Assembly: GCA_000708835.1 (NCBI GenBank)
Contig: DF237037.1
Location: 62,001 to 126,000, forward strand
Source of the DNA: Klebsormidium nitens
Taxonomy: Eukaryota; Plantae; Klebsormidiophyceae
Length of the DNA stretch: 64,000 nucleotides
Direction: 5' to 3'
Below the pieces are notes generated by a model that saw only the letters and a list, made by a program, of their open reading frames with translations, was not told the origin of the DNA and did no database searches. Shown piece after piece: positions 992-52,696 of this stretch. A program made the translations under genes and the position numbers. Positions within the stretch are counted from its first letter, which is position 1. Each line of letters starts with the position of its first letter.

Positions 992-8260
<7,269 letters not shown>

Positions 8261-11764: not shown

Positions 11765-17311
<5,547 letters not shown>

Positions 17312-18602: not shown

Positions 18603-21600
18603 ATGGAGGTTGAGGCTTTCAAGTTTCCTGGCTTTCATATCATTGGAGAAGTCTACTGCACGTCGCGCTCGGTGGTCTATCGGGCGCAGCGAGAGAAGGA
18701 CAACTCAAGGGTGGTTCTGAAGACCGTGCCGGCTGCGTTGGTGTCTCCGGCCACCAGAGCCAGGCTGCACAGGGAGTATGATGTCACCAAAGACCTGCAG
18801 GTGAGCTGACTCTGAAGAAGTATCCCCTCGAGCAGGTGTGCTGACACGTGCTTGCTTTTGCCCCGCAGATGTTCAGACGCCTGGGCTCCAACTTTCTTCA
18901 ACCAGCCTTGGTTACTAGTTTCTTGAACCAATTTCAGTAGAGCACTTCAAGAAGTGCTCTTTTCATTCATTGCTGTGCGCATTTGACGGAGGATGCCAAT
19001 GTGCGGAGGGCATCCACGACGCCCCTGATGGATGCGGGATGCACCAACGGGTTTTGATCTTTCGGAGATCGCTCTTCCCTGATTTCTGGCTCTAGCTCAA
19101 TCGGTTACAACAGCTAACTCCCAGCAGATGGAAGTTTTTGTCCTGCCCGGGGGCACCCATACGGCGTTTGAATTTTGGATTAGGCCGGAGTCGGACATTG
19201 GACGTTGAATTGAGTCACATCTGCCATACTACTCTCAGTCAAATATTAAGGCCTGTCCAACGAATATACCATTCACCTTTTCCTTCACCGTGCTGTGAGT
19301 TTTTCTCTCTCCCACCATAAAAACGTAACATAAAAGTACTTCTGAATTTAGTTAGCCACCGTTTCAAAAAGCGAGAAGTACCGGAAAATTTGTCCTGCCT
19401 GTCATTTGCCACCATTATGATGATGTAAATCACCAATTTTGTGATGAATATTTGATATGGAGCTTGCCCCATTGTGCTGACCAGGAATCCCCGTACATCG
19501 CACGCGCTTCTGAGCTTCTTGAGCATGGGGGCCAAACAGTTTTGGTATTGGAGGACCTGGGGGCCACGTCACTGGAGGCATATGCCGGCGGGGGCAAGCT
19601 GAGCGTCATTGATGCGCTCAGAGTGGGTATTGGTGTGGCCAGTGCGCTGGAGCATCTGCACAAGGCGGGGCTGATCCACAAAGATGTGAGTGGCAACATC
19701 ATTTGCTGGCACTGCGGGGCTGGAATGGGGGTCGGTCCATAGGCCTCTTTGGATCAGCAAAGAGACCTCCAACTATGGTCAGGTTTGTTGCTGGTCATGG
19801 GGGAAGACTCTGTCAAGCACATTATAGGAGCGAGGGAAACGTTCTGTGCATATAGAAAAAAGTTCTCAATGTGTCCAACAAGAGGGGGGGGCTTGGAAAC
19901 GAAGGCATGGTCGAATGGTCGTGACTAAAGCGCGTCCTGAGTTCAAGCCACGGATGACTGGCCTTGCATTGCGTAGGCGCCTCCTTATGGTTCTAATCAT
20001 GCTGACTTGCCTGTTGAAGGCCCCAATCGATCGTCAGCTTCTGTTAGAGTGAGGTGTAAGACGGTTGATGCGTACCGCGGACTTTTGGTGAAGCCATATT
20101 AGAGTTTGGGCAGGCGCTTTGTGAGTGGTCATGTAGCCTAGGACAAGGAGGGACTTTTCCTTACAGAATAACCACAGATACATCAACGAGCGGGTTACTA
20201 ATTGGCTAAGGCCCGAGATAGGTTAAGTCACAATAGTTCGAAACGTAATTCGCTTAAGGTTGGCATGTGCAGGTCAAGCCGGCCAACGTAATGGTCGCGG
20301 ATAACCTGGGGTTGGTCAAGCTAACCGACTTTTCCATCTCGAGCTGGCTCCCCGAGGAGAACCGCATGCTGATGCCCCCTGACGTCATGAAAGGCACCGC
20401 CGCATACATCAGCCCAGAACAGGTGCGGCGCTTGCAAGCACGCTTTCAAGAGCTCCCTTATCAAATTCATGTACTCGTTCGATAGCTGAGATATCCAAGT
20501 CATGCTCTGAAAGGAGGCAGTGGTCTGAATTCGTTTGCGGTTTAAAGATTTCGAAGTGGTTTACCTTTCGGATGAAGGTAAATATTCTCGTGGATAGGTG
20601 TGCACATTGGAGCACTTCAAGGACGTTGTTGCTAGCTTCTGTCAAACTTGGTTTTTGAGCGGCTTTCGTGCGTTCTGGTTCCTCCATATAGACTGACTAA
20701 ATGCAGTTTATTGCAAGGAAGAGTTACTTACGCTATTTCCTTTGGTGCCTACCATCTTGATTACCTGAGCCTCTGTCTGAGAACATAGGGCTCACAAGGT
20801 CCTTGACGCCCGAACGTTCCAACGGACGGATCAAAGATTATGATTTGGGAACGACGCTGAGCTTATCTCGAATACGACTTGGCACCTTACGAAGAAGAAC
20901 ACCGTCTGTAGAAACTTTCACCGGAAGCTGCGTTTTGAACATCGACTGCTGTGTAGCAAACGTTCTGTAACGGAGAAGCCGACATCTTGGCCTACTGTCT
21001 CCAGAACTGAGTTTCACAACAAGCGGACCGAAAGCAAGCCTCCCGAAACCAAAAGGTGCTGAACTCGCTCCAAATTTTTCACAGACGGGCCGTGTGAACC
21101 GCGCCGTCGACTTCCGGTCGGACCTCTACTCTCTCGGCGTGACACTGTACGAGCTCCTGACAGGACAACGCCCCTTCCGCGCCGAGGAACTTCAGCAACT
21201 CTTGTATCAGGTAAGCAGCCAATTATCGAACAGCTGGTGCGGGGACGTGGAAAAATGAGGTATCTGAACTGAGATTGCCAAGTCGCCACCGAGAGTGTCT
21301 CTTGACGGAGTTCCGAATACATGACCCGGGATGACCCTTTATTCGGCGATTCTTGTATGTGTTCTTCTCAGCCTTTTGGAAACCCCATTGCAACCTAGGA
21401 GCTACGTTGCTGCATTGAGCTCAGTTCTTCAAACCTGAAGGACCAGAATCCTATAACGCAAAAGGCCCTACATTTATTGCATCACCTATGGCGACCGACA
21501 AAGAAACTGCTTTCCTGCTTGTACCAGCACATCGCAGTGGTCCCGGTTGCCCCCGCCGCCGTCGACCCCGCCATTCCGGAAGTTGTTTCCAGCATTATGA

Positions 21601-21735
21601 TGAAGCTCCTGGTGAAGGACGCGGCAGGGCGGTATCAGACGGCCGCAGGGTTGCGGGCAGATTTGCAGACGTGTTTGGAGCAGCTGAACCGGGGGGAGGT
21701 GCGGGAGTTCCCGCTTGGCAGGGGGGATCACACTG
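18603..21735 (+). other. N-terminal Ser/Thr protein kinase domain of the hybrid kinase (exons 1-5)
   Basis: VVLK lysine, alphaC RLHREY, HKDVKPAN catalytic loop, TDFS, SPEQ, DLYSLG and the RYQTA arginine are all present. Confidence 0.9.
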
Positions 21736-24700
21736 GTGAGCTTCACGTCTTATTCCGGTAAAAAGATGGAGGAAGAGAGAGGGGACGGAGAGGAGAGGGA
21801 ACGATAAAAGTAGAGATGAACAAAGCAAGGGTAGGAAACGGACGGAGGACAGGAATTGGCGTCAAAGCTGCATGTAAAAGATGTTCCGTGCTGCTTTGGG
21901 AAGTTGTTTGGCAAACCAGCGAGAAGAGGCAAAAGTTCTCTCTATTTTCTGAGGAGTCCAGCTGACCTCTCGTGAACCTTGCTGGGCGAGACTATCATTG
22001 CTTGCTTTGGGTTGATTGCGGGTTCGTTATCTATCGCAGTGGGCCGTCATGGCTCTCGCAGAGTATCTCGTCCGGGTGTTTGGTCGGAATAACGTCATAA
22101 GGCACGGACGCTTACTGGGTAGGTCCGTCCTTCCACCGTCGTTGTACATCGAGCCTACGTCTGCAATCCTGTCCAACATTCAGAATCATCATAGTTCTGG
22201 GAGGTTCTAAATCTCCGATGCCGATTATTGCAGGGCGCCTGCGCACCCCGGCCCACGTGCTGCGAAATGCAACCTTTGGGAAGAGCTGACAGAGTACTTG
22301 GTTTCTGACCTGGTTAGAGTCGGCCGCAGGGCGCTGTGGTCCACCTGGCTCACGGTCTGTGAGTTGCAACTTCGATCAACTCTGACAAGAAGGCTAAAAT
22401 GTTAACATTACGCGTTGACATGCGCAGGGCGCTTGCGCACCCCCGCCCACGTACTGGGCCGCACCAACGAGGTGACGGCGCTACAGGCCAGCCTGGCGCG
22501 CGTTGCGAGCAACAAGACGCTGGAAGTCGTCTTCATAAGCGGATACAGCGGGATTGGGAAAACGGCGTTGGTCGAGGAACTGGCGCAAGTGAGCCCGCGC
22601 GGAAAGGCGGCGCTGGTGCAGGGCAAGTTCGACCAGTACAGCCGCGATATGCCGTTCAAGGGGATCATAATGGCCATGCAGGTGAGCGAGCTGCGGCAAG
22701 AGACACTAAGAACGATCGTCGTCTCTCTTTCCAACCTTAGCTAGTGGCCCTTACTTTCTGGGGAAGGGCAGGCCCTTGATTTGACCTAAAACTAGGGGTT
22801 TGGTTTGCGGACCTGCGAGGAGGTGCGAAGCTTGAATTGGTTGGTGCCTGCTGTTTCATCCTGTCAAAGCGAGAGCCTGACCCAATGTTTAGTCGGTCTG
22901 TTCGTGGGCACAAGAAAAATGGCGTTGATTGAGCTAGAACATTTGTTCAAAGGCAGACCCTTCTACTAGTCACGCACTCTCTTCACGTACCAAATACTGT
23001 ACCTCCGTAACCCGCCACAACGGCTTTGACGGGACGGACGGCCTTGAGCTTTTATTCTCGTTGAGGTGTTGCAAACTCACTGCTGACGTGGCCTAGCGTA
23101 GCAGCTTTGGTCTAAGCCTCAACGTAGAGCCTGCTGCAGCCTCAGGCGGTGCTGGGCGAGCCCTGGATACCAATTCAGTGCTCATGTGGCGCTGACGTGT
23201 TGCTGACGCGGCTATTTCGCTCGGTCTGCAGACCCTGCTGCAGGCGGTGCTGGGCGAGCCTGGGGTGACCATCCGGCGGTGGCGCGACCAGCTGTGCGCG
23301 GCGCTGGGCAAGAACGGGCGCCTCATGACGGACGTGCTGCCCGCGCTGGGGCACCTGATCGGGTCGCAGCCGGAAGTGCCGCACATGGATGCGACCCCGG
23401 CAGAGGCCAGGTCAGAGCCTGTCCGAATGCCTTTACTTTACCTTTTCTTCGGGTCTTAATATGATTCTCGGGGCTGATTAGCAAAGACGTGCTGCCCGCG
23501 CTGGGGCACCTGCTTGGGCCGCAGTTGGAAGTGCCGCACATGGATGCAACCCCGGCAGAGGCCAGGTCAGCGATTTTGAGTCGGGGGTTCCGAGCGTTTA
23601 GGTTGTGGAAGTGTCAGGTTTGTAGAATCATGAGGGACGTGCTGCCCGCTTCGGGGCGCCTGATTGGGCTGCAGCCAGAATTGCCGCACATGGATGCAAC
23701 CCCGGCCGAGGCTAGGTCAGCCACGTGGATGTCGTTGAGGTTTGAAGTCTGGCCTCTCGAATGTCTCATTTATAAACGTGTTTTTAAAGTTCCGCCAGCT
23801 TCTGAGCTGGAGCGCATGTTCACCCGCAGTGTTCGCCCGCAGCGTTCGCCCGGCCCTTATTTTACATGCAATCGACACCTATCTTCTGACTCACGCTCGT
23901 CCCACCCCGCAGGTTTCTCGAGACATTCGTGCGTCTCCTCCGCTGCTGCGCCCAGATGCGCGCGCCCCTCGTCCTCTTCCTGGACGACCTCCAGTGGGCT
24001 GACTCCCCCTCACTCCGCTTCCTGGAGGCGCTCACGCGCGACGGCGCCGGCGCGCCCCTGCTGCTGATCGGCGCCTACCGCAGCCCCGACGCCGACGAGC
24101 GCCACGCGCTCGCGCGCCTAGTTGCCGGGCTGGCGGAGCAGGAGGTGGTGCGGGTGGAGAAGATCGAACTGGGGCCGCTGCCGCTGGCGGATACGCAGGT
24201 TGGGAAGCAATATAATTGCTTCGAGGTCCTGAGATGCCGTTTGGATACCGTCCAAGAATGGTCGGAATGAGGGCGAGGCAACGCGTACTTGCACCTGGAT
24301 GTGCATCGCTTCGGTGCTGAGAAGAAAGGCACGTCCGCTGAAAGAGCAGGGTCCAACACGCACGGTGCTCCAGAGTTGGCGAAGCCCGCCAAGGGACAAC
24401 AGTTTGACGACTCGTATCTCAAAGCACACAGTCCCGATAGTCTTCAGCAGTCGTTGAATTCAACGCCTGGTGGTCTTTTTGTGCCTGCGCATTGAGCTCG
24501 TAAATGTGCAAACTGCTGTGTCAATCAACCTGAATGTCTACAACCCCAAACAAGTGAGCCATTTCCGCCCAGGCGCTAGTAGCTGCGTGCATCGGCGAGT
24601 ACAGCCCGTGAGTGACGGAGCGGGTGCAGCCGTGACGTGGCGGAGCGGGCGCTTTTGTTGTACTATAAGTATCGGACTCGTAATACGCACTTTTGAATAT

Positions 24701-27700
24701 CCTAATCAAAAGCTTTTTTTCCGGTCCCGCCCAGGCGCTGGTGGCGGCGTGCATCGGCGAGGACAGCCCGTGCGTGGCGGAGCTGTCGCGCGTGGTGCAG
24801 GACAAGACAGAGGGCAACCCGTTCTACGAGCTGCAGTTCCTGAGCGCGCTCGTGCGTGACGGCCTGCTCTACTTCGACAAGGACACCGGCCAGTGCAGGT
24901 ATGCTAAAGTCAGCACCGGGAAGATGGAAACACAACATAAATTAACTGGAGAAATGTGACTCTAGTGCGACTGTGCGAGGAGCGCGCTCGTGCGTGATGG
25001 CCTGCTTCATTTTGACGCGGACATCGGCCAGGTGCAGGTGGAGCCGTTGGCGTCAGTAACTTGCGTTTTGAAATCAGGGTTTGCTAACGACTCCTTTTCG
25101 AGCGCTCTTCCACAACAGCCTGCTCTGATTCGACAAGGTGCAGAATGTGGCCGCTGACGTCAGCACTCTCGATACACGTTAGAAACGAGGTGCAGCGATT
25201 CTAGCCCCTCGATTGGATTTTGAGGTCTTGGCTCCTGGATCTTGTCACCTTGTGCAAACTTGTCAAATTACCGTATCAAAACGCTTCCGTTGCATGCAGA
25301 GCGACCAGCACGCCTGCGCACATCACCGCAGGTCACGACGAAACTTTGGGGAACTCTGACACGAAGGGGCTCTGGGTTTCGTACGTTCAGTAATTTTGAC
25401 TTGGGAAATGTAAGTTTACCTTCTCCGGGGGCCTTGGCAGGTGTTACAACATGGCGCAGCTGCGCACATTGCCGCAGGTAATGATGAAGTTGGCAGGATT
25501 CATCAAACTAAGAAGCCCTGACTTTCTTGACCCCCTTCTTGACGGAGGCTCACCTTCTCCGGGGCCTTTTGCAGGTGTTACGACATGGCGCAGCTGCGCG
25601 CGTCGGCGCAGGTGACGGTCAACGTGGTCGACTTCATGGCGGACGAGCTGCGCACGCGCCTGCCCGCGCCCACGCGCGCCGTGCTGTCGCAGGCCGCCTG
25701 CCTCGGCGACGGCTTCACGCTTACCATGCTCGCGCTCGTCTGCCAAAAGGTGAGCCCCGACGCACTGTGAGGCTGCGTGCATTGTACGTTTCTGTGGGGT
25801 CTGTTCATAAAGACGTCGTTCACTTCATCAATTGCTCAAGTCCTTTCTATCACGAGTTGTCCATCTGAAAAATGTATTCGTCCTCGCTTGATTTCTATTC
25901 AAAACAGAGTAATTAGAGTGCCTGAAGGGTGCGGCAGGAATGTACTCAGATGCTCACGTGTGTTTTGCCGGTGAATGTGATCAACGCTTCTTGAGTTTCG
26001 TAAGGTCAAATCTGATCGTCTCTTCGGGATGCCTAGCGTTTTGGCCTTCTAAAGCATTCCCTCCTGCTGTTCTTACTCGGTCAAGCGACCCTGGGGCAAG
26101 GCAAAAAGACGAGGAAATATGACAAGAGAATGGAGCAACGCTTGGGAAGGGGCCAGTCGCATGCTGTCGTTCATTCAGACTGTCCTGACAGTCGAGTGGT
26201 CGGGGTCCCTGGCCAGCCAGCCCAACTTTCACGCATAGTCTTCTTGGATCGCGCTGGCCGATCAATAAAGCCGAAGTTACGCGTGCCCTTATGCCGAGAC
26301 GTGACGACGATACGCGGGCCTGTAAGTCATCTGACCGCTAAGAAACAAGGTGGCTTTGCTGTCCACCTTCTTTAAGATAGGTAAGCCCAGAACTTGTTGA
26401 GGATCTGCACTGCAGCAAACGAAGAAGTTCGCACCGGGTTCTTGTGAGCAACCCGGCTCCGGCAGGTTGTCCACTTTAAGGAATCTTGCGACTCGTGAAG
26501 AGCCCGAAAGTCTTGTAAAGACCTGACTCGAGGAAATGCCTAACCTTGAAACGCCTTTTTCCCTAACCCTAGAGCGCTTATATTTTGGTTTTGCCAACGC
26601 TCGTTTCCCCACCCTGCGCAGCCTACCAAGGAGCTTATCAACAAGCTGTGGCCGGCTTTGACGGCGGGCTTTTTGCTGTCGGTTGGAGACGAGTACTGCG
26701 AGCAACGCGATCAAGACCCGACCGCCCTTGACGCCGCCCGGTTCAACTTCCGCCACGACCGCATTCGCGAGGTGAGGCACGTGGGCATGCCACCTGAAGC
26801 CACGTGGCAAGGCAAGCTGGTGAACATTGCGGCGGAATCACGATCGGGCATACATAAGAGTACTCTGGTGAATTGACTGTCCGGAACTTGAGCACAATTT
26901 TTAAGGTGGGGAAATCTGCAAAACTAACGTGTCGTGCTTTGTGGGCTTCCAAAGACGGAATGTCGTGTGAATTTTGGTGGGAGGTTGAATTGACACAAAG
27001 ATGAAGGGACTTTCTATGCGAGCATTGTTGACAATCTGGCTGTTTGCCGTTTCCTAGGAGCTGACCCTAACGTTGCGTTGGCCACTCCTTTACTCGTTCC
27101 CTTGCAGTCATGGGACCCTAAAACCCTGACTTCCTGAAACCATACGGGCCTAGAGATTGGTCAGACTCTCTTTCTAGTGTATCGAACCCCAGCCTGGCTT
27201 TCGCAGGCCGCTTCCCAGGAGCTGACCGCCTCGGGGCCGCTGATATCATGTTGGCCACTTCCTTGCTTCCTTTGTTCCGTCAACTTTAGAACTCTCTAGT
27301 CGTGTTCTTGTGAATTCGAGTACTTTTCTCTTTGTAAGATTTACCGACTTGACTCATTCCAGGCCGCATACCACAGCTGACCGCCTCGGGCCCGCTGATC
27401 TCGTGTTGGCCACTTCCTTACTTCCTCTGTTCCGTCAACTCTTCACCTTTCTAGTCGTGTTCTTGGAAACCCGACTCGGCTCTTTTGCAGGCCGCGTACC
27501 AGGAGCTGTCCGCCGAGGAGCGCCCCGAGGTGCACCTGCGCGTCGGGCGGCGGTTGCTCGACGGCATGAGCGCGGCGCAGTACGAGGAGCACGCGTTCGC
27601 TGTCCTACACCACTTCAACCAGGCACTGCCGCTCATCACCGACCCCGTCGAGCGCTTACGGCTCTCACACGCCAACCTCGCTGCAGGTCAGGACCCCCGC

Positions 27701-30700: not shown

Positions 30701-33700
30701 GCTTGCTCTAGATCATGTTGCCAGGTAACACAAACGCTATCGGTAATTTTGCGGAGTTTGGGCAGTCCATACGCTGCAGCTTATGAAAGAGAGCCCTCCT
30801 ACACTGTTCGCTTGTGGTTGTGCTGGGGCCATGCACTATGTTCTGTTCGAATCGAATCTTTGTATCTCTGGGTCTCATGAAGTGTGCTTCACGAGTCGAT
30901 CCGAGGACCTACTTTTGCTGCTCATCCGTCGGCTTGGTTGGAAGCGGGCGGGCGCGGTTCGTCAGAGTCGCTTGTGAACACGCTTTCGGCACCTCAGACT
31001 GCGCAGAGGGGTGCTTGGAAACTATCGCTGTGTGCCTACTCGCACAGAAAGACTGGCTTTCCCACAGCTGAATAACATCAGTTTTGCGCCTTAAGTGAGA
31101 CTAGAACTCCTCGAGCGCCAGATTTGATACAACAGAGAGAGGAGACCATAAAAAGAGAGGCAAAAGTGAAAAGAAGAAAAGAATTGTTTGACCGCGTAAC
31201 CCGCTCCAAGCTCCGTCTCACTGATGTGCAGCGTTTTGTCGGGCGAGTCTCCAAACGTGCGGGTCGGCACCATCAGACTGCGGAGATCGGTGCTCAAAAC
31301 ATGTCGCTGCGCACCTTCTCGCACGGAAAAGCTGATTTTCGAAGCCTTATGTTTGACTTCACACACTGCTAACAAACTCTATTTTACACTTGTGCAGCGT
31401 TTTGTCTGGCGAATCGCCGAACGTGCGGGTCGGCACCCTCATCGAGGATGCGGTGTGGGAAGACGCGGCCTTTCTGCACGAGAATGTCGCTAACCACCTG
31501 AACCTAGCCTCTTATCAGCTGCTGAAGATTGCGGCCCTGTGCCACCTGCAAGAGTACCGGTAAGCAGAGCTAATCAATATCATCCCATGGGCGGACATTT
31601 TCGGAGGCCTGTGTTCTGGAACCTCAACAAAAATTCACGAACCGCCGAGTTTGCTGAGTAAATTCGCAAATTTCCTGAGGTTAGTAGTGGAATTACATCC
31701 AGCTGTTCCAGCTTGGTAACACGTTGGAAAGACGAACTCGAAAGGGCCAACAGTAGATCAGCCGTATCTCTCTTGCTCATCATTCTCGTTGGTGAAGACC
31801 TGGCTCTGAAGCTTGGGTGCCAATTTCTAACGCAAATTGCCGTCGTTTGGACCATTTTGAACGTGCTGAACAGAAAACTTTGCCTTACGATCTGTGGATT
31901 TGAATTGCAGGTCCACCTTGCAAATGAAGCAGTAACTTTCTCCACACAAGGAAATCAAAAGCTCAAACATACTAATCAGAAGCATAATGCCCGCTCTTGC
32001 TTTACCGTTTTCTCCCTTCGTCCTCCTCAGAGCTCTGCTAAAGGTGGTAGCCGCGGTGGAGCCGACCCGCGAGGTGCTGCAACCAATTGTCTTTTCCGTA
32101 CTACTATCCTTCTATGAGGCTCTCGCATGCGCTCAGCTCCTGCCCGCCCGTGTCCCTGGCGCCCCGGCCCCTCATCCGAGTTCTGAAGCCGCCTACTGGG
32201 AGCGCCGGCTTGGAGAGTGCGTATATCCAGAAGTTGTGTTTGGGCGGTGATCTTTCTCTGCACCTACTCGATATTGCTGCGCTTAAGTGGTTGAAAGATC
32301 TTCTTCCTTGGCTCGCAAAGGAAGTAGTGGCAATAGGAAGCATCCGGCTCGTATGCGACTTTGGATTGAACTCGCAAAGTAGAAAGAGGCTCGACGTTGG
32401 GCTGAATTATGATCCTGCTTTGCACCTGCCGTAATGTCAATAGAAGCTCGATGCCGGGGTTCCGGTTGCGGAAATGCTTTGCACATATACAGCCTTCTGC
32501 TTTAACAACGAGGTTTTGTCCTTGTGTTTGAACCCAAACTTTCCGTCGAACCTACACGTCATGGTTACTCGACTCTTCCGTCTCGAAATCTTCTTCCTCC
32601 CAAAAATGGTCAATCTTGTATCGAGAGTTCCGACCCCACGTTCCACCGGCAGGTGCGTTGATGCTCTCAAAGAGTACGGCGATGTGAACCCCCCTCTTCA
32701 CGGGCACCGTTACTGGCTCGCCTTCGCGGAGCAGCAGCGCTTGGAAGGCGACCACCTAGCAGCAGAAGTGGCGTATGAGAAGGCCATCGACGGTGCAGAG
32801 GCGGGCAACTTCCTTCAGGTCGGCCGCCGTTTTGCGTCAACCTGCTCAGTGTCCCGAGTCTGCCAGCTTGTGCAGATTCGTCGTTCAACAAGTCGCAAGA
32901 CAAACTTTCGTGCTGAGGGCTTTCGGAGTATTTGCTTCTGTTAACAGATGAGTTGCAGGAAGCAGATTCGCCTTGCCTCTTCGAAACTTTATCGAAGCGA
33001 GTCTATCGGAGATGGACACTGATGTTAGATGCGGCAAGGAGGCAGCCGATGCTAGCCTCCTCAACTATAATCATCTTTCAATCAACTGCTGGGCCTGCAT
33101 GTCGCCGACCTCTTCTCCGCAACTCATCGACCTGAACACTCACCACCTATCAACGCTCCTGGTTTCATAGCTTCAACCCTGACCTCGTGTTCTTGTTGTC
33201 CAGGACATCGGTTTGGCACACTTGCTCGCAAGCCGCCACTACGCGGCGGCCGGCCGACGCCGCACCGCAGCGTGGCACCTCACCGAGGCGCAAGACGCTT
33301 ACGCCGCCTGGGGGGGGGCCGCGGTGGTCCAGCGCCTGCCAATCATCCCCCCCCACCAGCGGCCCGGACGGCATAAGCCGGCGGCCCCGCCGCGTCGAAG
33401 CGCATCCCCGAGCACAGACTCGGCACTCAACACAACCACAATCGATTCACTTCAGCCCGTCGGGCAGTTGACGGAGGACAGCTTACAGAGCCTCGACGTG
33501 CGCGCAGTGCTGGCCGCGTCGCAGACCCTGAGTAGCGAGATCGTGCGGGAGGCGTTGTTGGAAAAGTTGCTGAATATAGTGATGGAAGTGGCAGGCGCGC
33601 GTTACGTCGTGCTCGTGCTGCAGCGGTCGGGCGAGAGCGGGTGGTTTCTTGAAGGGAGCGCGAGTGTTGCCGGTCGCGCGGCCGGGAAGCGACCAGAGGA

Positions 33701-36700
33701 CCCGACGGAAACAAAGCGCTTCAGGTAGTTATTTGCTTCTTGCGAATATCATTCTCGTATCGATCTTTGCACCTCGGAAAGCCTCAACTATTGATCATCA
33801 GAGTTTGAATGGTTTGGCAGACGTAGGGCTACTTTTTAGATTGATCGTTATTGACCAGTTACGCCTCTTGATAATAATCTAACACTATTGGCCAGGTAAG
33901 GAAGTAGTCATTTTCTGCCAGATTGTCACCTCGGGCAGTGGCTAGAGCTGATGCGCTGATTGAAAGGGACAACTCTCAGTTGGTCATGGGTCCACTTCGA
34001 GGGTGTTGCACGCTCGACGCTATTCAAAGTTCGCTGCCAGTCGCGTTTTGCAGTCCTAGTGCTCCAGTTTCAGACCCCCGTAAACTCACTCCATACCCCT
34101 TCGCCATTCTGCTTCAGGTTTGCGGATGATACTGCAGCTCAAATGTCGGAAGGAGTGCTGACCAAACTGGCCCCCATGCCGCTGAGTGCGGCGGGCGCGT
34201 TGGTTCCCCAGGCGCTTGTGTTGTACGTTTCGCGGACGCAGGAGGTGGTGATGCTGAAGGGGGGGGGGCAGGCGGCCGCCGTCAAAGACCCGTACCTGGA
34301 CCGGCACCAACCGCAGTCGGTGTTGTGCATGCCCATTGTGCGGCACGGAGGTGAGGTTTTAGTGTTTGGAAAGCGATGGTAACTCTAAGTTCCGTACTTA
34401 GACGAGGTCAACCGACGTTTGCCATGTAACAGGACAGAGGACCACTATCACAATCGAAAGAATCGAAACCAGATTGATTGATGGTGTTTCAAATGTGGAT
34501 CTAATTTCGGGTTCTGGTTGAATTTTGGGTTTTTGAGACAGAGGACAGGGGTTTGACTGGAATCAGACCGATGATCATTAGCAGTGGAAGCACGCCCCAA
34601 ACTCGCGACACGAAACATCACAGCCTGGACCTCCGTACAAGAAGCCGGTCGCTCTTGCATCGCCTTTCAGACCCGTTTGACGTTGTTACTTTGGGCTTTG
34701 TGCTGCACAAAAGACCGACCGTCTCTACATCGACGAGTTCCACTTTAGCCATTCAAAAAAGACACTTCGGAGGCCTCTCTTCGTTCTTAGCAAAAAACGA
34801 CCTGCTCGGGGCTCGATTGCTGTCTGTCAGCCCTTTCTTGAGACCGCGAAACAAATGCAAAATGCGCAGAGATGGGCGGTGTGACGGACGTGGAGCATAC
34901 TTAGCTCCTCGAGGGCCAGACTGCTGCTGGTCAGCCCTTTTTCAAGACTGTTTTGGAGGTCAGCTACCCAAATAATAACTGTTTGCTGAGCCGGAAACCA
35001 ATGCAAACGGTGCAGAGGTGGGCGGTGTGTTATACGTGGAGCACGACCTGCTGCCGGACGCGTTCCCCGCTGCGCGCATCCAGACGCTGGCCATGCTGAG
35101 CGCGCAGATCGCCATCAGCATCGAGAACAGCGACATGTATGCCGAGGTGCGTGCCGCCGATCCAATGCCCCCTTTGTTTTCCGGAGACTGAACCGGTTTA
35201 TACGGCGTCTTAGAGGTCAAGCGAATGGCCCATTTGATTCAAACCAACCAAGGACGACTGTCGGATCGTAAGGAAGATTTAAAAAGGTCGGTTTCATGAG
35301 CACCTGGGTAGCTGCGAACTAGCCCATCTGGCGACTGCACACGCCTTCCAAAGCTCCAAAGTATCTCATCCAGAAGTCACTTTGTCGTAAACTCACTGTG
35401 CATACGGTGACCATGCACTGCGCTTCGCCTGTGCGTAGCGGCTAGTCGCACTGCTTTAAAGTGGTCACGTGTCTGCAGATGCGGAGCCGCGAAGTCGAGC
35501 TCCTGACGGCCAAGAACTTGGCAGAGGAGGCAACAAGAGCCAAAAGCCTCTTTCTGGGTAAGGACACTTCCCGCTCGTTTGCGGCCGAAGCTCGTCATTT
35601 GCAGTGTGCGGACAATGTGCACGGACCCTTAAGAGCGGATGACGTAACGCAGCTTCAGGTTCGCGTCGTTATGATCAACTTGAGCCAATGTCGGAACTTT
35701 AGGGAGCGGCGGCTCCCTCCCAGCGCTGACGGCGTGCTTGGAACAATAAGAGGACAGCATGACCAGAAAACGAGTGTTTGGCAGCCCGCCGTGCCTCCGT
35801 TTATTGCTCATCAGTCTCATCCTTTCCAGCAACTGTTGTGCCTTTTCTTCCTCTCATTATTTGATCACCCGTTACTCTTGATTGGATCCGTTTGAAGAAT
35901 TTTTGCACTCATCGTCCCTCATCTTTTCAAGTGATCACTGAAAACTCAACTGATCACTCGTCATCGACCGACTGCCGTATTGTTTCAATGTCTCATCATT
36001 CCTGGCTAAGAAAGTGAATGCATCTCCCCCTCCCTGCAGCGACTATGTCGCACGAGATCCGCACCCCCTTGAACGCGATCATCGGCATGACGTCACTCCT
36101 GCTTGGCACGGACCTGTGGCGGGAACACCACGAGTGCGTGGAGACCATTCGGCAGTCGGGCGACCAACTTCTTGGCCTGGTGAGAGGGCAGCACTTCTCT
36201 AGTTTTTCGCTGGATTTGAACATGTAGAAATGTAGGTGTTGCAGATAGTCTCTTGAAAAGGTTTGGAAATGGAGTCTTCCCCTATTTGTAGTTAGTATTC
36301 TTGACAAATGCACCGGGCTGCAGCTGCCGTTTTCTTTACGAGCAGCCTAACTGGAAAGTCTTGGGAACGCTGGCAGGTAGTCGCAAATTGTTTATACTGA
36401 CGTTAAGCGCTGGTTGCCTCAATCTTCTATGTTCATGTCATCAGAAGTACGTCCTCATGTAAAAGCAACAGCTTATGAAGAGGAGCCATCCGTTGTATTG
36501 CGTATACGTCGCCCAGGAGGCACTCTCAACCTCAACGAGGATTGCACGCTTCCAACTTTCCTCCCGCCATCTTCGTCCGCAGATAAGCGACATTCTGGAC
36601 TTCAGCAAAATCGAGGCGCGCACTCTAGAGCTGGAGTCGGCGCCCTTCAGCGTGCGGCAGTGCCTCGAGGAGGCCGCCGATTTGGTCGCCGCCAAAGCCG

Positions 36701-39700
36701 CTACTAAGCAGCTGGAGCTCGCGACGCACACTGCCGCCAATGTACCGGGCACCGTTCTGGGCGACGTCTCGCGGCTGCGCCAAGTCCTGGTGAGAGTGTA
36801 CATGGGGAATGCTTATCGTGTTTTTTCTGCGTTGGGTCGAGGACTTGGTTGACTTTCTCCTATACGAGCAGCTAGAGCTTTCGATGCACACGGCTGCGAA
36901 CGTACCGGGCACCGTTTGGGCGACATCTCGCGACCCGGCCAAGTCAAGTGACATTGGCGCGCCTCGTGGTGTCGTTTTCGAAAAGTCGAAGATCGGATGA
37001 GCATCCAGCACGCCGCAGGCAAGCTCAGTATCGGGTCACCGCGCTCTGATTTTCAACAGCTCAGACAGTGACAAGTTACTGGAGTGGACAGTGCAGGTTT
37101 GACAAAGGGACAGCCGGCAAGGGTCGCCTGTAAACATAGGTTCCGGCAGCAATCTGATGCTCTGCGCCACAACGTAGGGGTTGCAAGATATAAAAAGTGG
37201 TGATATCTTGTTATATTTCTACCTCTTGAGAAAACACGACACGTGCTGACGTGTTTGTAGGTCAACTTGCTGAGCAACGCGGTGAAGTTCACGGAGGAGG
37301 GCGAGGTCATCCTCCAGGCCAAGTGCATCGAGTCGGACGACAAAGCGGTCTCCCTCGAGTTCTCGTGCAGAGGTGAGCGCTTTTGACGCTTGCAATATGC
37401 AGGGCTATCCATTGTTGGACCGGCACGTTTTGCTCTAGGTGGAAACGCTCCCGAATGTGGGATCGATTTGCTGCACTTTGAGTTGCTTGAAAGCGCGAAT
37501 GATGATAAATGCTGGCTGCGGTTGAAGGGAAGGTGAATTCACCTCGAGTTACTGGACCCGCTAAACGCCGTGCAACACTGCTGAGGCCTTCGTATCTTAC
37601 ACCAATTCCCGCTCCTTTTGGTTTCACCAGATCGTCAACATTTTCGAGGTTTCTAGCAGCTCTTTACTGCGCTGACCGCTCGCTGCCGCCGTTTTTCCTC
37701 GCCCCCAGACACTGGCATTGGGATCGCCGCGGAACACATCCCCCGCCTCTTTACCGCTTTCTCGCAAGCGGACGCATCGACAACTCGTCGATTTGGGGGC
37801 ACTGGCTTGGGCCTCGCCATTTCCAACAAGCTCGTCAGGGTAATCGGCTCTCTCGTGTTCTTCTTTTCGTTCTTCCTGTGTGCATAATACCCTTTCCGTA
37901 CAATCATTTTGTCTCTGATTTGATCTTCTGGCCATCGATTTGTCGTCTGAGGACTTCAGCATAGAAACGAACACTGCGCAGCTGTTAAAAGGGAAGAGGC
38001 CGTGGATTCTGCCTACATATCATGATTGTGGAGAATGCGTAACGACTTAGTTTGTAGCTTAATATGCTCCAACAGCAAGTACTAGGGACAATCGTGAAGC
38101 GCTGAAGCGCTACGTTTTTCCGCATCCAAAATAGTCATTGTGCAGCCCCCAAAGTATCCACAGCCTTGGAGTGAGTTGAATTTCCGAAGGCTTTGAAAAG
38201 TAAGCATGTTGATGGGTTCCGCGTGCCAAGGCGTCGGTACGGACTGTCGGTTGGCCCCGCTTGCGTATCTTGTTCCTCTCGATTAAAGTACAAGAACGCC
38301 CTCGAATCGAAGTGCTCGAGCCATGTTTACCACGTCCTACGGTGCAGAACTGCAAACCAATGGCCTTCGCTTTGTCAGAACCACTCACAAACGCTCATCC
38401 GAATGCAGGCAATGGGGGGCCACTTTACCGTCGACAGCGCCCTCGGGGCTGGTTCCACCTTCCGCTTCGCCGTGCAACTAGAGACTGCACCTAGTATCAT
38501 GATTGAAGCGGTGCCGGCAGACGCGCGCGCATTGCAGGGCAAAACGTGCTTACTAGTCGCGCGTAATGCCAGCTTAAGAGCCATTCTAGAAGAGCAGGTC
38601 GCGGTGTGGGGGATAAAGTCCACTGCGGTCGCGACGGAGGGGGACGCTTTAGAAGCGCTCCACACGGTGAGCGCCGGAAAGGAGAAATGCCGAGCTTGGA
38701 TGGGTTTGGCCTCAAAAGCATCGGATGCTTGAATCGTGATTTTGATGCGAACCTCTCAGCGTTTGGGGCTGCTAGGCAGGCCAGCGAGAAGCATCATCGC
38801 AGCGAGCAGTCTCCGCACAAAGGAGTTGGACGAAGAAAGTTGTGCGCTCGTTATCTTGCGAGTATTCTTGTAGCCTGGTTGTCCGCTCTGTGGTGTCTAC
38901 ATAGGCTCAACATGCGGTGATGAGTTTCCGCTTCTGTTAGAAAAAGATGTCTATAAAGGCTACCTGCTTTAATTTTCTCTAGTTTACCTCAACCTTTGAG
39001 CAACAGCGTTTCCGGGTCTTTCTGCAGACAAAGCCCTCGTTCGACTTTGGAGTAACCGACCTCAGCACTCTCAATTGCGGAACGATTGCCGGGTGCGCTT
39101 TTCTGAAGGCAGCGCCCCGATTCCCCCTGGTCATTCTGAGCACGTGGACTGAGAGGGAGGCCAAAGCACAGGTGAGCAGACGGCTCGGGGTTCAAACTTC
39201 TAGACCCTTATTCCTCTTTTCAACCCTAAAAGTCAAAAAATCTGATACCCAGAGCTCTCTCTCAGTGACTGCGGCATGCGGGGCTGCAAAAAGACTGAAC
39301 GCATTGTGCTGACACTCCGGAAAAGCACCAGCATCTGCATCCTTCACCAGAGATTTAGTGCACCGTGAATCGGTCCAAAACAATTTGGGCGGATGTTCCC
39401 TGCCCCACTCACGAGCAGGTTAAGAATTCACCTTTAAGCGCCGACAGAGACCTTTGGGGGTTGGTTTATCGGAAGAAAAATGCTATCGAGCCTGGAGCAA
39501 GAGCTTCGCCGCAATCCCTTCCTGGTCCTGCTCCGTTGGCCGATTCGCAACTGTCGAAATCAGTGCTTGTAAGAAGGATTTTTGGATATTTCCCCGCTGG
39601 AATCCGCTACCGACCTTGTCATTCTTGTCGGAACGTATGGCCAGTCAGCAGTGCACCGTTTAGCGGTCGCCATGCTTCAAGTAAGGGAGAAACTACAAAC

Positions 39701-42029
39701 TTTCCAGAGAAGCAGAGCGCGGACACCTGAAACGCAGGTCTTTGATTGCAAGTCCCGGGCCTGATTGCAATGTTGCAATGGAAGGAACAGAGTTGTGCAA
39801 TGATCAGAACGGCCCGAAATCTTCAAACATACAAAGAGAGTCTGCTGCGACGGTGGCCACACTTTGAACCCACAGCAACCTCGCGAGGGCTCTAGCCTCA
39901 ACCTCCGTAAAAAGTATCATTTCCCGATTTCAAACAAAGGCTGAAAGCCGGCCTCTTCTGTTGCGCAGCGGACGGATCACGACCGCGTGATCATCATCAG
40001 CAAGCCCGTGAAACATGCCAGCCTGTGGGACGCCGCAAACAAACTCCTAACGACGGGCGCCCATAGCAATGGGTCTCCCACCGCGAACGGCGTGCTTCCG
40101 TGCGCGGGGGCGGGGCCGCACAGACTGGAGTCGAGCTCGAAGCTGCGGGCTCTGCTCAGAATCTTGATTGCGGAGGTGAGAATTCTGCTAAATTGACTGT
40201 CGAGACTCCACCGTTGGGCCCCTTCTTTCACTTTCGCGCAGTCATGTCAAGGGTTCCAGAGAACGACGAGGGAAAGAAAAGAGGGACGAAAGGCGAAAGT
40301 GCTCGGCAGGGGCCTCCGAAGGTGAGAGCCGCGTGACCAGACCACAAAGAAATCTGGATCAGGCAAACCTTGGGTTGGGGTTTGAGTCACAGATCTGTTG
40401 AAAAGGCAGTTCCGGCACTGATGGTGCCAGCAATATACGCGCTGCCCAGCTTGACGTCGAAATACGCCGGAGGATTTTGCATGATAGATACGGGGCCCGG
40501 CAAAGCAACAGAAACTTATGACGGCGTGCCTTTCCTTCTGGGCTCTTGTCTTGACGGTCATGCTGGCGATTGTTGAAGGGACACGGATGTTGTATGGATG
40601 TTCCCAGGCGTTGCTCAGCTGAAGTGTCGCTTGTTCGTGAAACGACGGATTACAATTCTGAGACCGGCTGTCCAATTGTCAGACGTCGCCTTGTCGCATC
40701 CGAAAGGAACCGTAGCTGTGCCCCTGGTATACCGCGGGTCAGACAACCTGATATGCTGGAGCAACCTTATCTAAGAACTTAAGAATCTTCGTAAGATCCT
40801 CATACTAAAATAGGACTCCTTACCTCCTTTTTTGGCAACCCCCTGGACAATATGGCAGAGCAGCAGGTGGCCAACTTAATAAAAGCCAAAAACCTTGAAG
40901 CCCTAGATCCCTAAATGTGTCAAAACCTCTGTTTTCTGGCTGTCTCAGGACAATATGGTGAACCAGCGGGTGGCCATCCTCCTTCTGAAGCGGCTCGGGT
41001 ACACTGCGGACTGTGTCGCGGACGGGCTGGAGTGCATCCAGGCGCTGCAAACGCGGCCGTACCACGTGGTCCTCATGGACTTGCAGGTACGTACCCTGTA
41101 ATCCCTATGGGTTTTCCGGTACGTACCGCGTGGTGCTTTCGAGAGATCGGGTTGGTACCGCCAGTTCGGTTTGATGATTGACAGGCAAGTGTCACGTGGC
41201 GTATATTGATTGCTGCCGTTTTTGTGGGCAGGTGCCACGTGGTGCTCGCGTATGTGCCTGTACCGCCACATTCTTGGACCAATGATCTCGAACGGTTGTC
41301 TTTCGACTGAGTCGAGACGATCCAACGACCATCGTCGTAGCTTAACGTCGAGACTTTACTCGGGACTGCCACGTTATCAGACGTTCAGCGTTTTCGGATG
41401 TACTGCTTGCACACTTGCGTGAGACCTCTTTGCTTATCTGAAGATGACGTCGCTTTGACTTTACCTGAACATCACGCCGCTTTGACTAGCCACTGCCTGA
41501 ATGTAGTTTACGATCTCTACCTGTTGTCTCTTCTGCAGATGCCCGTCTTAGATGGTCTGCAAGCATCGCGGGCTATCTGTACCGCATACCCCAAAGGAAC
41601 GCGGCCGTATCTAGTTGCTGTGACGGCAAACGCGATGCAAGGGGACAGAGATCTGTGCCTCGCTGCCGGAATGGACGACTACATAAGGTGAGAAGTTGCG
41701 CGTACTCGCAACTTGAAGATGCGTCAAGTCTCAACATTCCAAGCTTTTCTCGTTTAAAAAGGAGATTGGGCAAGCAAAAGATTAAAACTCCTCAATCCTG
41801 TCAAACGGCGCCTTCCCACGAGTCCCAAACTTGCGTACGGAACTCCGAACGCTTTTCACCGACATGAGTTGTGATCAGGTCGTGGTTTAGATTGTCCGTT
41901 GCCTCTCATTTGATCGCGTCCTTAAATCTTGTGTTGCCCTGTTGCAGCAAACCAGTGCGGATCGAGGAGCTTAAGAGAGTGTTAGATGCTCAGGCATGTA
42001 GGCTGGCCAGTGCCGAACCTAAGATTTGA
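18603..42029 (+). CDS. Hybrid Ser/Thr kinase - STAND/AAA ATPase - GAF - histidine kinase - receiver protein, about 2,080 aa; exons 18603-18800, 19485-19685, 20273-20422, 21085-21210, 21528-21735, 22428-22681, 23232-23410, 23913-24198, 24735-24898, 25575-25749, 26622-26771, 27491-27686, 28410-28565, 28906-29024, 29463-29951, 30504-30724, 31398-31559, 32031-32216, 32653-32818, 33204-33724, 34118-34350, 35016-35146, 35479-35557, 36040-36179, 36583-36789, 37261-37372, 37709-37839, 38409-38666, 39109-39171, (39645-39680 possible), 39969-40175, 40949-41086, 41539-41687, 41948-42029
   Basis: Kinase [42 protein letters not shown]; Walker A GYSGIGKT; Walker [13 protein letters not shown]; TEGNPFY; [17 protein letters not shown] and AQIAISIEN; H-box [14 protein letters not shown]; N box [10 protein letters not shown]; G1 DTGIGI; G2 [11 protein letters not shown]; receiver ILIAEDN, VVLMDLQMP, AVTANA, DYISKP. 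The 33 firm exons sum to 6,237 nt (divisible by 3) with phase-matched GT-AG introns. The 38667-39968 region is the least certain. Confidence 0.93.
22428..26771 (+). other. STAND-class / AAA_16-like P-loop NTPase module of the hybrid kinase (exons 6-11)
   Basis: [20 protein letters not shown] (Walker A), [16 protein letters not shown] (Walker B), LIGAYR, GNPFY and FRHDRIRE match the bacterial kinase-ATPase fusion family. Family placement is from recalled motifs. Confidence 0.85.
23331..23720 (+). repeat. Three tandem copies (period 155 and 150 bp) of the 3' half of kinase exon 7 with its GTCAG donor
   Basis: Copies end at 23410, 23565 and 23715 and encode [54 protein letters not shown] and [27 protein letters not shown]. 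Confidence 0.95.
27203..28175 (+). repeat. Diverged tandem copies of both ends of kinase exon 12 in its flanking introns
   Basis: Acceptor-side copies CAG-GCCGC..GCTGACCGCCTCGG at 27203-27310 and 27359-27467. Donor-side copies of GCCAACCTCGCTGCAG-GTCAG at 27837-27856, 27991-28034 and about 28137-28175. Confidence 0.85.
33473..35146 (+). other. GAF domain of the hybrid kinase
   Basis: [17 protein letters not shown]...[15 protein letters not shown]; [17 protein letters not shown]; GVLYVEH...[24 protein letters not shown]. Confidence 0.85.
35479..38480 (+). other. HisKA + HATPase_c transmitter; phosphoacceptor His codon at 36051-36053
   Basis: [23 protein letters not shown]; [12 protein letters not shown]; [21 protein letters not shown]; DTGIGI; [22 protein letters not shown]; MGG...[13 protein letters not shown]. 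Confidence 0.95.
40150..42029 (+). other. C-terminal canonical receiver domain; phosphoacceptor Asp codon at 41078-41080
   Basis: [56 protein letters not shown]. Confidence 0.92.
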
Positions 42030-43838
42030 ATAGATCAGTGCAGGTTTAGACTTCACTATCAAGTGAAGTGTCTATCGTTATTCTACAAAGGGCGGATTGC
42101 AATAATATCTCATAACGACTACTCAAAACGGCAGGGCGTCCAGCTCATTTATGTGTGTCGCATGGTAGACTTGGCATTGATAGTTTCGGCACGGTCGAGT
42201 GCCGGACGAGAAGGTAGCCCGGAAAGAGACCCCGGATCTTAGCCCGGCTTGATAGTTGTCTATTTTAGATTACAACCTCAAATCATTCGAAACAAGCTTA
42301 GCAAGAGTGGTATTGATTGGACGAGAAACAAATATGCAGTGCATGCATCTTGAAGATGCCAGAAATTACGTCCATTTCCGAGCAGGCCAAACTTTAGTTA
42401 GTCAATTTTGATCCACGTGATACATTGAACTTGTTAGCCAATCAAATGATAAGTAACTTGACATGACGAACTAGACCCGAATCCCCGACACCGCGTCTGC
42501 ATGGTACATGGGGGATCAGCCCGGGCCCGGCGGCGCGGACTCGAATTGACCGCAACTCGCTATCAATGCATGAGACTGAGTCACGCATGCAGTCAAGATT
42601 GACATGCATGATGCAGCCGCGATACTCTGTAGAATACAAGCTTCAATGACATACAATTCTTAGCAAGTGATGGAAATTAGTTTGCACAAAGTTGATATCA
42701 GCATGCGCCTATAGCTAGCTTTGTATAGATATACTAGCTGATGGTAGTTATTCCGGCCAACTTTCAGTAGGTTGATCGTCATGCATGAGGACCGTATAAA
42801 CCTGCCATGCAGATTATGAGTTCAATCTATACGACTATACGTATAAAACAGTTGAGCCACGTACGGCTACCGTAAGTTAAAACTCACAAGCTCATTCAAT
42901 GATTGATTTCATGCTTTGAAGTAATGTTTCGGGCAATTAAGTTTTCAGTCAACATTCAAGGTCCCGTCGGACACTCTCTTGGTCCGGTCCAGGCGCGCAC
43001 GAACACCAATTCTAAGTTATCTTCTCGAAGTCTCAAAAGTCGGAGATTGTCCCGTTCAATTAGAGGATTCCTGGAACATGTCATTCGTGCGCTTGTATCA
43101 TGCATCGGTTGCAATGCAGAGACGAACATCATGCAGTTGTTCAACGCCAAAGTTGATTGTTGGATAAAGTGACCGGCTGCAAGTGCAAGTCATCGTCAAT
43201 TAGTCGATTAGCCATGCACGCACTCTTGTTGCTCAAATCAGGACTGTGATATATAGACGTACGATTAAGGTGAAATTGTCTCGCATTTTAGAGCGTCGGA
43301 AGTGCGCTTCTTGTAAAGTTGAAGATTGATGTGAGCTGATGACCATCCGATTGAAAGTACAAAACTGCTTCAGTATCTTGATAAGCAAAACGTGTCACAC
43401 GGAGAAGCCCAGAACCTGCAGGCTGGCAAAACAACCAAGAAGGTTTCATTGCCTGGCTGATGGACTCGCACTTATACGCATGGGTCATATGCGTTACGTA
43501 CGTGTGCGCCGCGTGGCGGCCGCGCGCGGCCTGCGCGCGCGCAAAGGAGTCAAGTCCGGGTCTTGCTTAAACCCCTTTCACAATGCAACGGGCTTCGGAC
43601 GACCGTCGGATTATATACGTGACTGGTGCAGCACGTCTTAAGTGACTCACCGGCACGTCGTGCAGAGTGCGGCAGATCGGTCATGGCTCAGACGTGAACA
43701 TGCTGATCTCTTTCACTTCCTTCTGTGAAAGTTCGATAAGTAGCTTGACTGGCAAGACTTGCCCGACGTTTTGAAGAAGCTCTTTGATCACACCTCGCTT
43801 TCACAGTTATCATTCCGTGCAATCAGAAGTCCAGAACG

Positions 43839-47137: not shown

Positions 47138-52696
<5,559 letters not shown>

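Follow-up and report, generated by a model that had tools for sequence, protein, structure and literature searches.

We analysed a 64,000-nt stretch of contig DF237037.1 of the streptophyte alga Klebsormidium nitens, hereafter the window, and within it the region 18603-42029 of the + strand, which very probably is one expressed nuclear gene coding for a soluble hybrid sensor kinase of 2,105 aa, of the dual protein kinase or group X type. The DNA is eukaryotic, with a G+C content of ~52%, and the coding sequence at the locus is split into short open stretches. A tblastx comparison with metagenomic algal loci delimited 34 conserved coding blocks, separated by DNA that could not be aligned. Splice sites between neighbouring blocks were chosen on reading frame, GT-AG and site scores, the ambiguous ones being settled by ungapped match to the relatives and to bacterial homologues. 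The resulting model starts at an ATG at 18603, preceded 27 nt upstream by an in-frame stop, and ends at a stop codon at 42027-42029; its 33 exons hold 2,105 codons plus the stop and the frame is open throughout. The 32 introns are all GT-AG, measure 260-872 nt (mean 535 nt) and in many cases sit inside conserved motifs. When compared with 50 bacterial homologues, 30 of the 32 junctions presented no notable indel, and the two exceptions (introns 20 and 22) were confirmed by RNA. An earlier note on this DNA, made from the letters alone, had counted 32-33 introns and ~2,080 aa; the intron count stood, while the protein of the spliced model is somewhat longer.

Pfam scans were run on single exon pieces of the + strand, and gave the following matches:

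19500-21255, + strand: Pkinase
22406-22741 (E 2.6e-15) and 23890-24267 (E 1e-9), + strand: AAA_16, single exons, above the curated cut-off
34140-34379, + strand: GAF/GAF_2, weak (E 0.005, below the cut-off)
36018-36224, + strand: HisKA (E 1.1e-13)
37657-37884, + strand: HATPase_c (E 3.5e-11)
40907-41098 and 41530-41688, + strand: Response_reg

When the largest exon (29376-30074) was used as query in phmmer against the full library, it matched 589 proteins, mostly of 1,700-2,200 aa and with the match at residues ~850-1,000, and five of these ~2,000-aa bacterial proteins aligned collinearly with the window from 18660 to 41706. Since these five alignments cross the locus, it constitutes one gene-sized unit with the module order that the earlier note had read from it, that is, a single soluble multi-domain sensor in an alga of the green lineage. 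From the N-terminus, a Ser/Thr-kinase-like domain is followed by a STAND NTPase (AAA_16, MalT-like) and its helical arm of ~700 aa, then by GAF, HisKA and HATPase_c, and finally by two receivers, the first degenerate and the second canonical. The modules are distributed as follows:

18603..21735, + strand, exons 1-5: Ser/Thr-kinase-like domain, aa 1-295; Pfam Pkinase / PK_Tyr_Ser-Thr on exons 2-4, collinear with the homologue kinases
22428..24198, + strand, exons 6-8: AAA_16 / STAND NTPase core, aa 295-534; Walker A GYSGIGKT (Lys339), Walker B LFLDD (Asp463/464)
24735..32818, + strand, exons 9-19: winged-helix end of the NTPase and all-helical arm of ~700 aa, aa 535-1262; collinear with the bacterial relatives
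33204..35146, + strand, exons 20-22: low-complexity linker, then GAF (aa ~1346-1557); weak Pfam GAF_2/GAF on exon 21, RNA-confirmed junctions
35479..36789, + strand, exons 23-25: coiled-coil linker and HisKA; H-box SHEIRTPLN with phospho-acceptor His1588; Pfam, RNA-confirmed junctions
36583..38666, + strand, exons 25-28: HATPase_c; Pfam, with N, G1 (DTGIGI), F and G2 boxes
38409..40175, + strand, exons 28-30: first of two receivers, degenerate (aa ~1806-1970); alignment with its counterpart in the bacterial protein P0155 at E 1e-8
40949..42029, + strand, exons 31-33: canonical receiver and stop; Pfam Response_reg, with Glu1983-Asp1984, phospho-acceptor Asp2027, Thr2058 and Lys2080

All five modules named in the earlier note are therefore present, while a sixth, the degenerate first receiver, had been missed; its alignment to P0155 brought it out, and the region gave no Pfam match on the exon pieces. 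A Kyte-Doolittle hydropathy scan over the protein found no convincing transmembrane segment, in agreement with what had been noted before, the highest-scoring 19-mer (aa 1164-1182, 1.87) lying inside the helical arm. No exon gave a Pfam match to CHASE, to the ethylene-binding transmembrane domain or to another membrane-anchored input of the land-plant classes.

The transcript evidence came from sequencing runs guessed to be RNA and read as assemblies, which also contain low-depth unspliced pieces. Of the sampled words of window 30450-36250, 20 runs from seven studies contained a fraction of 0.05-0.42 (0.28-0.42 in the best eighteen), the exon share of that stretch in the model being about a third, and contigs from runs dated 2015 to 2024 in the seven studies were 100% identical to the window. 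These contigs carry two organism labels, which would fit strain NIES-2285, formerly K. flaccidum and now K. nitens, and the G+C content and the richness in introns also agree with this species. For the 5.8-kb stretch we then placed the contigs of four runs, each from a different study. Eight GT..AG joints in the contigs coincided exactly with introns 16-23, including the acceptor at 35478 that homology alone had left undecided, and loose contig ends cover the final bases of exon 15 and the opening bases of exon 25; in total, ten junctions (introns 15-24) were thereby confirmed to the base. One spliced contig of 4,896 nt (X3 record 9) reaches from beyond the 5' end of the coding sequence to 33726, with 3.6 kb upstream of 30504 as compared with 3.05 kb of upstream coding sequence, and another of 4,922 nt (X11 record 6) runs from about aa 616 to past the stop, with 2.2 kb beyond 34348 as compared with 1.78 kb of remaining coding sequence. 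Molecule starts and ends did not pile up inside the placed stretch between the two halves. Because the 4.9-kb spliced contigs bridge both halves and no ends accumulate between them, the kinase/NTPase and histidine kinase (HK) halves lie on one mRNA, and the separate transcripts that the earlier note had considered were not found. At 33697-34140, contigs from two runs read unspliced through intron 20 at a depth of 6-7, versus 40-130 for the spliced form; because the intron brings an immediate stop codon, this form looks like unprocessed RNA and not like an isoform.

The closest relatives of the largest exon were short open reading frame calls on long metagenomic contigs, and the loci on these contigs (L001, L002/L003 and L004) are intron-rich and have the same module order. 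L001 and L003 look like two paralogous lineages, because both come from the same sample. The comparisons with the window, in which synonymous sites are near saturation, gave the following amino acid identities and ratios of non-synonymous to synonymous substitution (dN/dS):

L002: 2,023 aligned residues, 66% identity, dN/dS 0.16
L004 (source run SRR14092360): 832 aligned residues, 67% identity, dN/dS 0.20
L001: 1,816 aligned residues, 60% identity, dN/dS 0.10

The gene is under purifying selection (dN/dS 0.10-0.20). Every module is conserved, from HisKA (80-85%) and the kinase (62-74%) down to the weakest region, between HATPase_c and the last receiver (40-43%). That two adjacent genes or transcripts (kinase/NTPase and GAF/HK/REC) were taken as one, or that the locus is decaying or contaminant bacterial sequence, is hardly credible: it has in its favour the length of the locus and the use of assemblies from runs only guessed to be RNA, and against it the spliced contigs that join exons 15 to 25 unbroken and extend ~3.6 kb upstream and 2.2 kb downstream, the lack of any pile-up of molecule ends inside the stretch, a frame open across 33 exons and the low dN/dS, bacterial contamination being ruled out by the spliceosomal introns.

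As for the single expressed gene, most of its modules keep the residues expected of them. The kinase domain, 74% identical to that of L002 and 62% to that of L001 with the motifs conserved in both, has Lys40 (VVLK), His-Lys-Asp133, Asn138, Asp152-Phe-Ser and the SPEQ motif. Its glycine loop is degenerate, as in the bacterial relatives and the whole family, and DFS stands in place of DFG in all three algal copies. The NTPase motifs GYSGIGKT and LVLFLDD are kept in the three algal copies, and this module also presented weak Pfam matches to nSTAND6, NB-ARC and NACHT. The GAF domain is weak in L002 as well (L002:12168-12872, Pfam E 5e-4, below the cut-off), but the region aligns to the GAF domain (E 1e-15) of bacterial relatives, e.g. 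residues 1310-1450 of P0013. The H-box SHEIRTPLN is identical in L001 and L002. In the first receiver, 43% identical to that of L002, the acidic pair is replaced by Arg-Asn, while the Lys (IISKPV) is kept. The claim that every catalytic motif is present thus holds for the NTPase, the HK, the last receiver and the Lys and Asp of the kinase, and fails for the degenerate glycine loop, for DFG and for the GAF domain, which has none.

To obtain a model of the NTPase module we folded the corresponding part of a bacterial homologue (P0196:293-706), the closest full-length protein, with an alignment of 50 relatives and the six window exons of the region. The predicted structure had a mean predicted local distance difference test (pLDDT) score of 93.6, and Foldseek matched it to Orc1/Cdc6, Apaf-1 and plant nucleotide-binding leucine-rich-repeat (NLR) proteins; Apaf-1 (16.9) was followed by the TPR-bearing STAND protein 6mfv (16.0) and by NRC1/NRC2 (15.9, 15.8). 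The nucleotide-binding, helical and winged-helix parts are arranged as in MalT, Apaf-1 and NLRs, supporting, on the predicted fold of the bacterial homologue, a MalT/Apaf-1-like STAND module and with it the NLR-like STAND switch proposed in the earlier note. Sequence searches of the PDB with the STAND part returned nothing beyond P-loop matches. MalT itself (Escherichia coli, PDB 8bob), which matches the module in sequence at the P-loop only, differs in ending with a LuxR DNA-binding domain and in having neither kinase nor HK modules; further STAND comparators are the TPR-STAND protein 6mfv and PknK-type kinase-AAA_16 fusions. The helical arm, 61% identical to that of L002 and 54% to that of L001, may be TPR-like; an Atlas feature search returned clusters named for TPR at 0.91-0.93, which we take as a lead only.

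The family and its presence in K. nitens are already published. Kabbara et al. (2018) annotated 67 histidine kinases in this alga, among them three group X members, KniteHK20, KniteHK56 and KniteHK59, the first described in the green lineage, and reported group X kinases as absent from the sampled Micromonas, Volvox and land plants (PMC6324907). The same authors report that the three proteins cluster with fungal group X, whose members carry a GAF domain and one related to Ser/Thr kinases, and that group X is polyphyletic (PMC6324907). The type goes unmentioned in a 2026 survey of kinases in zygnematophytes (PMC13730384). Among fungi, Chk1p, Mak2 and Mak3 comprise S_TKc, AAA_16, GAF, HK and REC domains, and Mak2 and Mak3 sense peroxide (PMC9069115); among cyanobacteria, the cbSTKIII dual protein kinases, such as HstK and Pkn40/41, have a Ser/Thr kinase at the N-terminus and a His kinase at the C-terminus, together with GAF, and are abundant in filamentous strains (PMC2176072). 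The algal polypeptide has an N-terminal kinase domain, AAA_16 after it, GAF before the transmitter, and HisKA, HATPase_c and a C-terminal receiver, which is the group X arrangement; it likewise presents the N-terminal Ser/Thr kinase, at least one GAF and the C-terminal His kinase of the cbSTKIII/HstK type. The resemblance to cyanobacterial HstK/Pkn fusions and to fungal group X claimed in the earlier note is consequently borne out at the level of shared modules (PMC9069115, PMC2176072), and so is the absence of the architecture from land-plant histidine kinases, none having been found in the sampled land plants (PMC6324907).

Each of these comparisons has its limits. KniteHK20/56/59, of which the present gene is likely one, come from the same organism and share the N-terminal Ser/Thr-kinase-related domain, the GAF domain and the HK core with receiver, while the published description gives no exon structure, transcripts, STAND fold or degenerate first receiver. 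Candida albicans Chk1p and Schizosaccharomyces pombe Mak2/Mak3, likened here by domain order only, are also soluble and exceed 2,000 aa, and have been connected with morphogenesis and the sensing of peroxide (PMC9069115), but Chk1p has an N-terminal extension of ~430 aa before its kinase, whereas the algal protein begins directly with the kinase. The cyanobacterial dual kinases (HstK/Alr2258, Pkn40, Pkn41) are collinear with it over the full length at ~31-35% identity and share the degenerate glycine loop and SPEQ, and their kin carry NCBI names such as 'trifunctional serine/threonine-protein kinase/ATP-binding protein/sensor histidine kinase' and 'hybrid sensor histidine kinase/response regulator'; unlike the algal gene they are intronless, usually have one receiver or none, and form a crown outside which the algal clade falls. 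A third set, P0196, P0155 and P0283 (kinase-AAA_16-GAF-PAS-HK-REC-REC-Hpt, with relatives in Desulfobacteraceae, Bryobacterales and Blastocatellia), is 41-43% identical over HK and REC and has the extra first receiver, but these proteins carry a PAS domain between GAF and HisKA and a C-terminal Hpt, both absent from the alga, and their first receiver retains more of the acidic pocket. Beyond the family survey, the present analysis adds the RNA-supported 33-exon model, the single transcript, the MalT-like NTPase module predicted from the homologue, the degenerate extra receiver and the apparent affinity of the transmitter to non-cyanobacterial bacteria. A streptophyte alga near the base of the land-plant line thus keeps an expressed and constrained cytosolic sensor of bacterial/fungal type, a type missing from land plants.

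Taking MalT-type STAND proteins and hybrid histidine kinases as analogues, we infer a mechanism in which a cytosolic ligand or redox signal would act at the GAF domain and/or the helical arm, freeing the STAND module from an ADP-bound closed state. The module would then exchange ADP for ATP, and ATP binding would drive self-association, which in turn would alter the HisKA dimer and lead to autophosphorylation of His1588. From His1588, the phosphoryl group could move to Asp2027 in the last receiver and from there, by way of a separate HPt protein, to response regulators. The kinase-like domain, with catalytic Lys and Asp kept, would probably provide a second Ser/Thr output or an autoregulatory one, and the degenerate first receiver is most likely a non-phosphorylatable regulatory or docking module. 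Peroxide is a candidate signal, by comparison with Mak2/3. In such a sensor, Ser/Thr signalling and His-Asp signalling would both be coupled to the ATP switch of the STAND module.

Several points weigh against this reading of the gene. The kinase-like domain may be a pseudokinase, as the missing glycine loop and DFS would suggest. No Pfam repeat matched the exon pieces of the ~700-aa helical arm. The STAND fold is that of a homologue ~31-39% identical to the algal protein and not of the algal protein itself, and the correspondence with KniteHK20/56/59 is one of description, not of compared sequences. Finally, what was observed of the mechanism is the presence and conservation of residues, every step of it coming from the analogy.

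The origin of the gene was approached through searches for relatives and through trees. Two profile searches each matched more than 7,000 proteins of the same architecture, mostly cyanobacterial and ~2,000 aa long, and the first of the two returned cyanobacterial proteins only; two rows marked 'src' in the second were cyanobacterial-like on inspection. The best full-length scores, 1,160 and 1,085 bits, belonged to uncultured bacterial proteins of the P0196/P0155/P0283 group, versus ~980 bits for cyanobacterial proteins. P0155 lies on a plainly bacterial contig, surrounded by type VI secretion, cytochrome bd and desulfoferrodoxin genes, and a scan of genome contigs, swamped by the generic receiver motif, gave full-length relatives of P0283 at two loci, in Bryobacterales and Blastocatellia. 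With a window-weighted profile against a collection of 5.8 billion clusters, the matches listed were all bacterial and included no plant protein, a result that is supportive and not proof, as scoring was confined to the 8,000 candidates with the most words in common. Nothing exceeded 360 bits besides the backbone proteins P0155 (617) and P0196 (559), and a window-like protein would score 440 according to a local test. Three cluster look-ups for relatives returned only metagenomic bacterial names.

The trees took in bacterial rows and three algal ones (window, L002 and L001), and their support values are those of the Shimodaira-Hasegawa-like approximate likelihood ratio test (SH-aLRT) from a quick search. 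In the whole-length tree (FastTree, 111 rows), the algal clade (100) sat on a long stem beside long-branch rows; its neighbours there were bacterial GGDEF-output proteins, a placement we took as long-branch attraction. The N-terminal kinase and NTPase tree (IQ-TREE, quick) left the algal clade unplaced, while in the tree of the HK and last receiver it fell (100) within a group with P0196, P0155, P0283, P0298 and P0370 (97), apart from the cyanobacterial crown (99). The trees thus exclude a place for the algal clade within the cyanobacterial crown, outside which it lies (100/99) in both the whole-length and the HK+REC trees. The grouping of the transmitter part with non-cyanobacterial bacterial proteins gives a first indication of a non-cyanobacterial affinity, and the sequence comparisons as a whole speak against a plastid (cyanobacterial) origin and would be compatible with an old transfer from another bacterium.

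Tentatively, and with some weight, the gene may have entered the Klebsormidium lineage by horizontal transfer, independently of fungi, and then have gained some 30 introns; the donor would be a non-cyanobacterial bacterium with a kinase-STAND-GAF-(PAS)-HK-REC-REC-Hpt protein. The position of the algal clade in the HK+REC tree points to such a donor, as do the top full-length scores of the same bacterial group, the extra first receiver common to both, the bacterial contig of P0155 with the full-length relatives in Bryobacterales and Blastocatellia, the failure of any close annotated plant or other eukaryotic protein to surface with the window-weighted profile, and the polyphyly of group X-like kinases in fungi and amoebae (PMC6324907). 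However, the whole-length and N-terminal trees leave the algal clade unplaced, with a long stem and warnings of long-branch attraction; the support is SH-aLRT from a quick search in trees without fungal, amoebozoan and other algal full-length sequences; two deeply diverged algal lineages with saturated dS mean that any transfer is old; and the donor group could not be named. The more specific scenario, in which a two-receiver kinase-STAND-GAF-HK gene came from a non-cyanobacterial soil bacterium, separately from the origin of fungal group X, and then gained some 30 spliceosomal introns, is possible but somewhat doubtful. If true, it would offer a datable natural experiment on the speed and route by which a bacterial gene turns intron-rich, with intron positions still differing between close relatives; and if an independent bacterial origin were shown by a well-sampled phylogeny, the gene would illustrate cleanly how introns can be acquired on a massive scale once a gene has been transferred.

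Vertical inheritance of an ancient eukaryotic gene, one that goes back to the same ancestor as fungal group X and the amoebozoan kinases and disappeared on the line to land plants, seems unlikely. It would account for the six-module order shared with Chk1p and Mak2/3 (PMC9069115), for the placement of the K. nitens members in group X by Kabbara et al. (PMC6324907), and for the 32 introns, many in conserved motifs, which together with deep paralogues in related algae suggest long residence in a eukaryotic genome; but none has been reported in other sampled Archaeplastida (PMC6324907), the window-weighted profile search found no close eukaryotic protein, and the HK+REC part groups with particular bacteria, group X being reported as polyphyletic. 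Endosymbiotic transfer from the cyanobacterial plastid ancestor is very improbable, despite thousands of cyanobacterial proteins of the same architecture and ~2,000 aa and the dual kinases described among them (PMC2176072), given that the algal clade lies outside a well-supported cyanobacterial crown in all three trees, that the scores against non-cyanobacterial proteins are higher and that the family is absent from the sampled glaucophyte, red alga, chlorophytes and land plants (PMC6324907).

Whatever its source, the gene differs from its close relatives in intron content. Neither L001 nor L002 has introns 4 (21211-21527) or 20 (33725-34117) of the window; L002 also lacks intron 8 (24199-24734) and has an extra intron of its own (L002:409-906) inside the counterpart of window exon 2. 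Twelve of the 32 introns (5, 6, 7, 8, 9, 11, 12, 15, 16, 21, 25 and 30; window 22234-40873) contain a diverged copy of the adjoining exon edge together with its splice site, 98-194 nt away (284 nt once), 79-89% identical where measured and with z values of 5.6-39 versus shuffles. Three consecutive copies exist of the 3' end and donor site of exon 7 (23323-23415, 23478-23570 and 23628-23720, a period of 150-155 nt), and each copy encodes a variant of one 27-residue peptide followed by AG|GTCAG. Introns 4 and 20, not shared by L001 or L002, were searched for exon-edge duplicates that would point to their gain by duplication, and none was found. A tandem copy of an exon edge, like those in the twelve introns, occurs once in a neighbouring gene (50907/51054).

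The next gene downstream on the + strand is a two-exon one (43788-44351 and 44893-45663; Pfam E 4e-17 and 3e-53) for a DUF4419 protein, a family that is mostly fungal and bacterial. Further neighbouring loci lie at:

48350-52711, - strand
60087-63074, - strand
5414-5758, + strand
13079-16319, + strand

The neighbours include a FAM135/DUF676 serine-esterase-like gene, two tandem leucine-rich-repeat genes, a peptide-chain release factor (PCRF) gene and a class I/II aminotransferase gene, the last of which resembles serine palmitoyltransferase.

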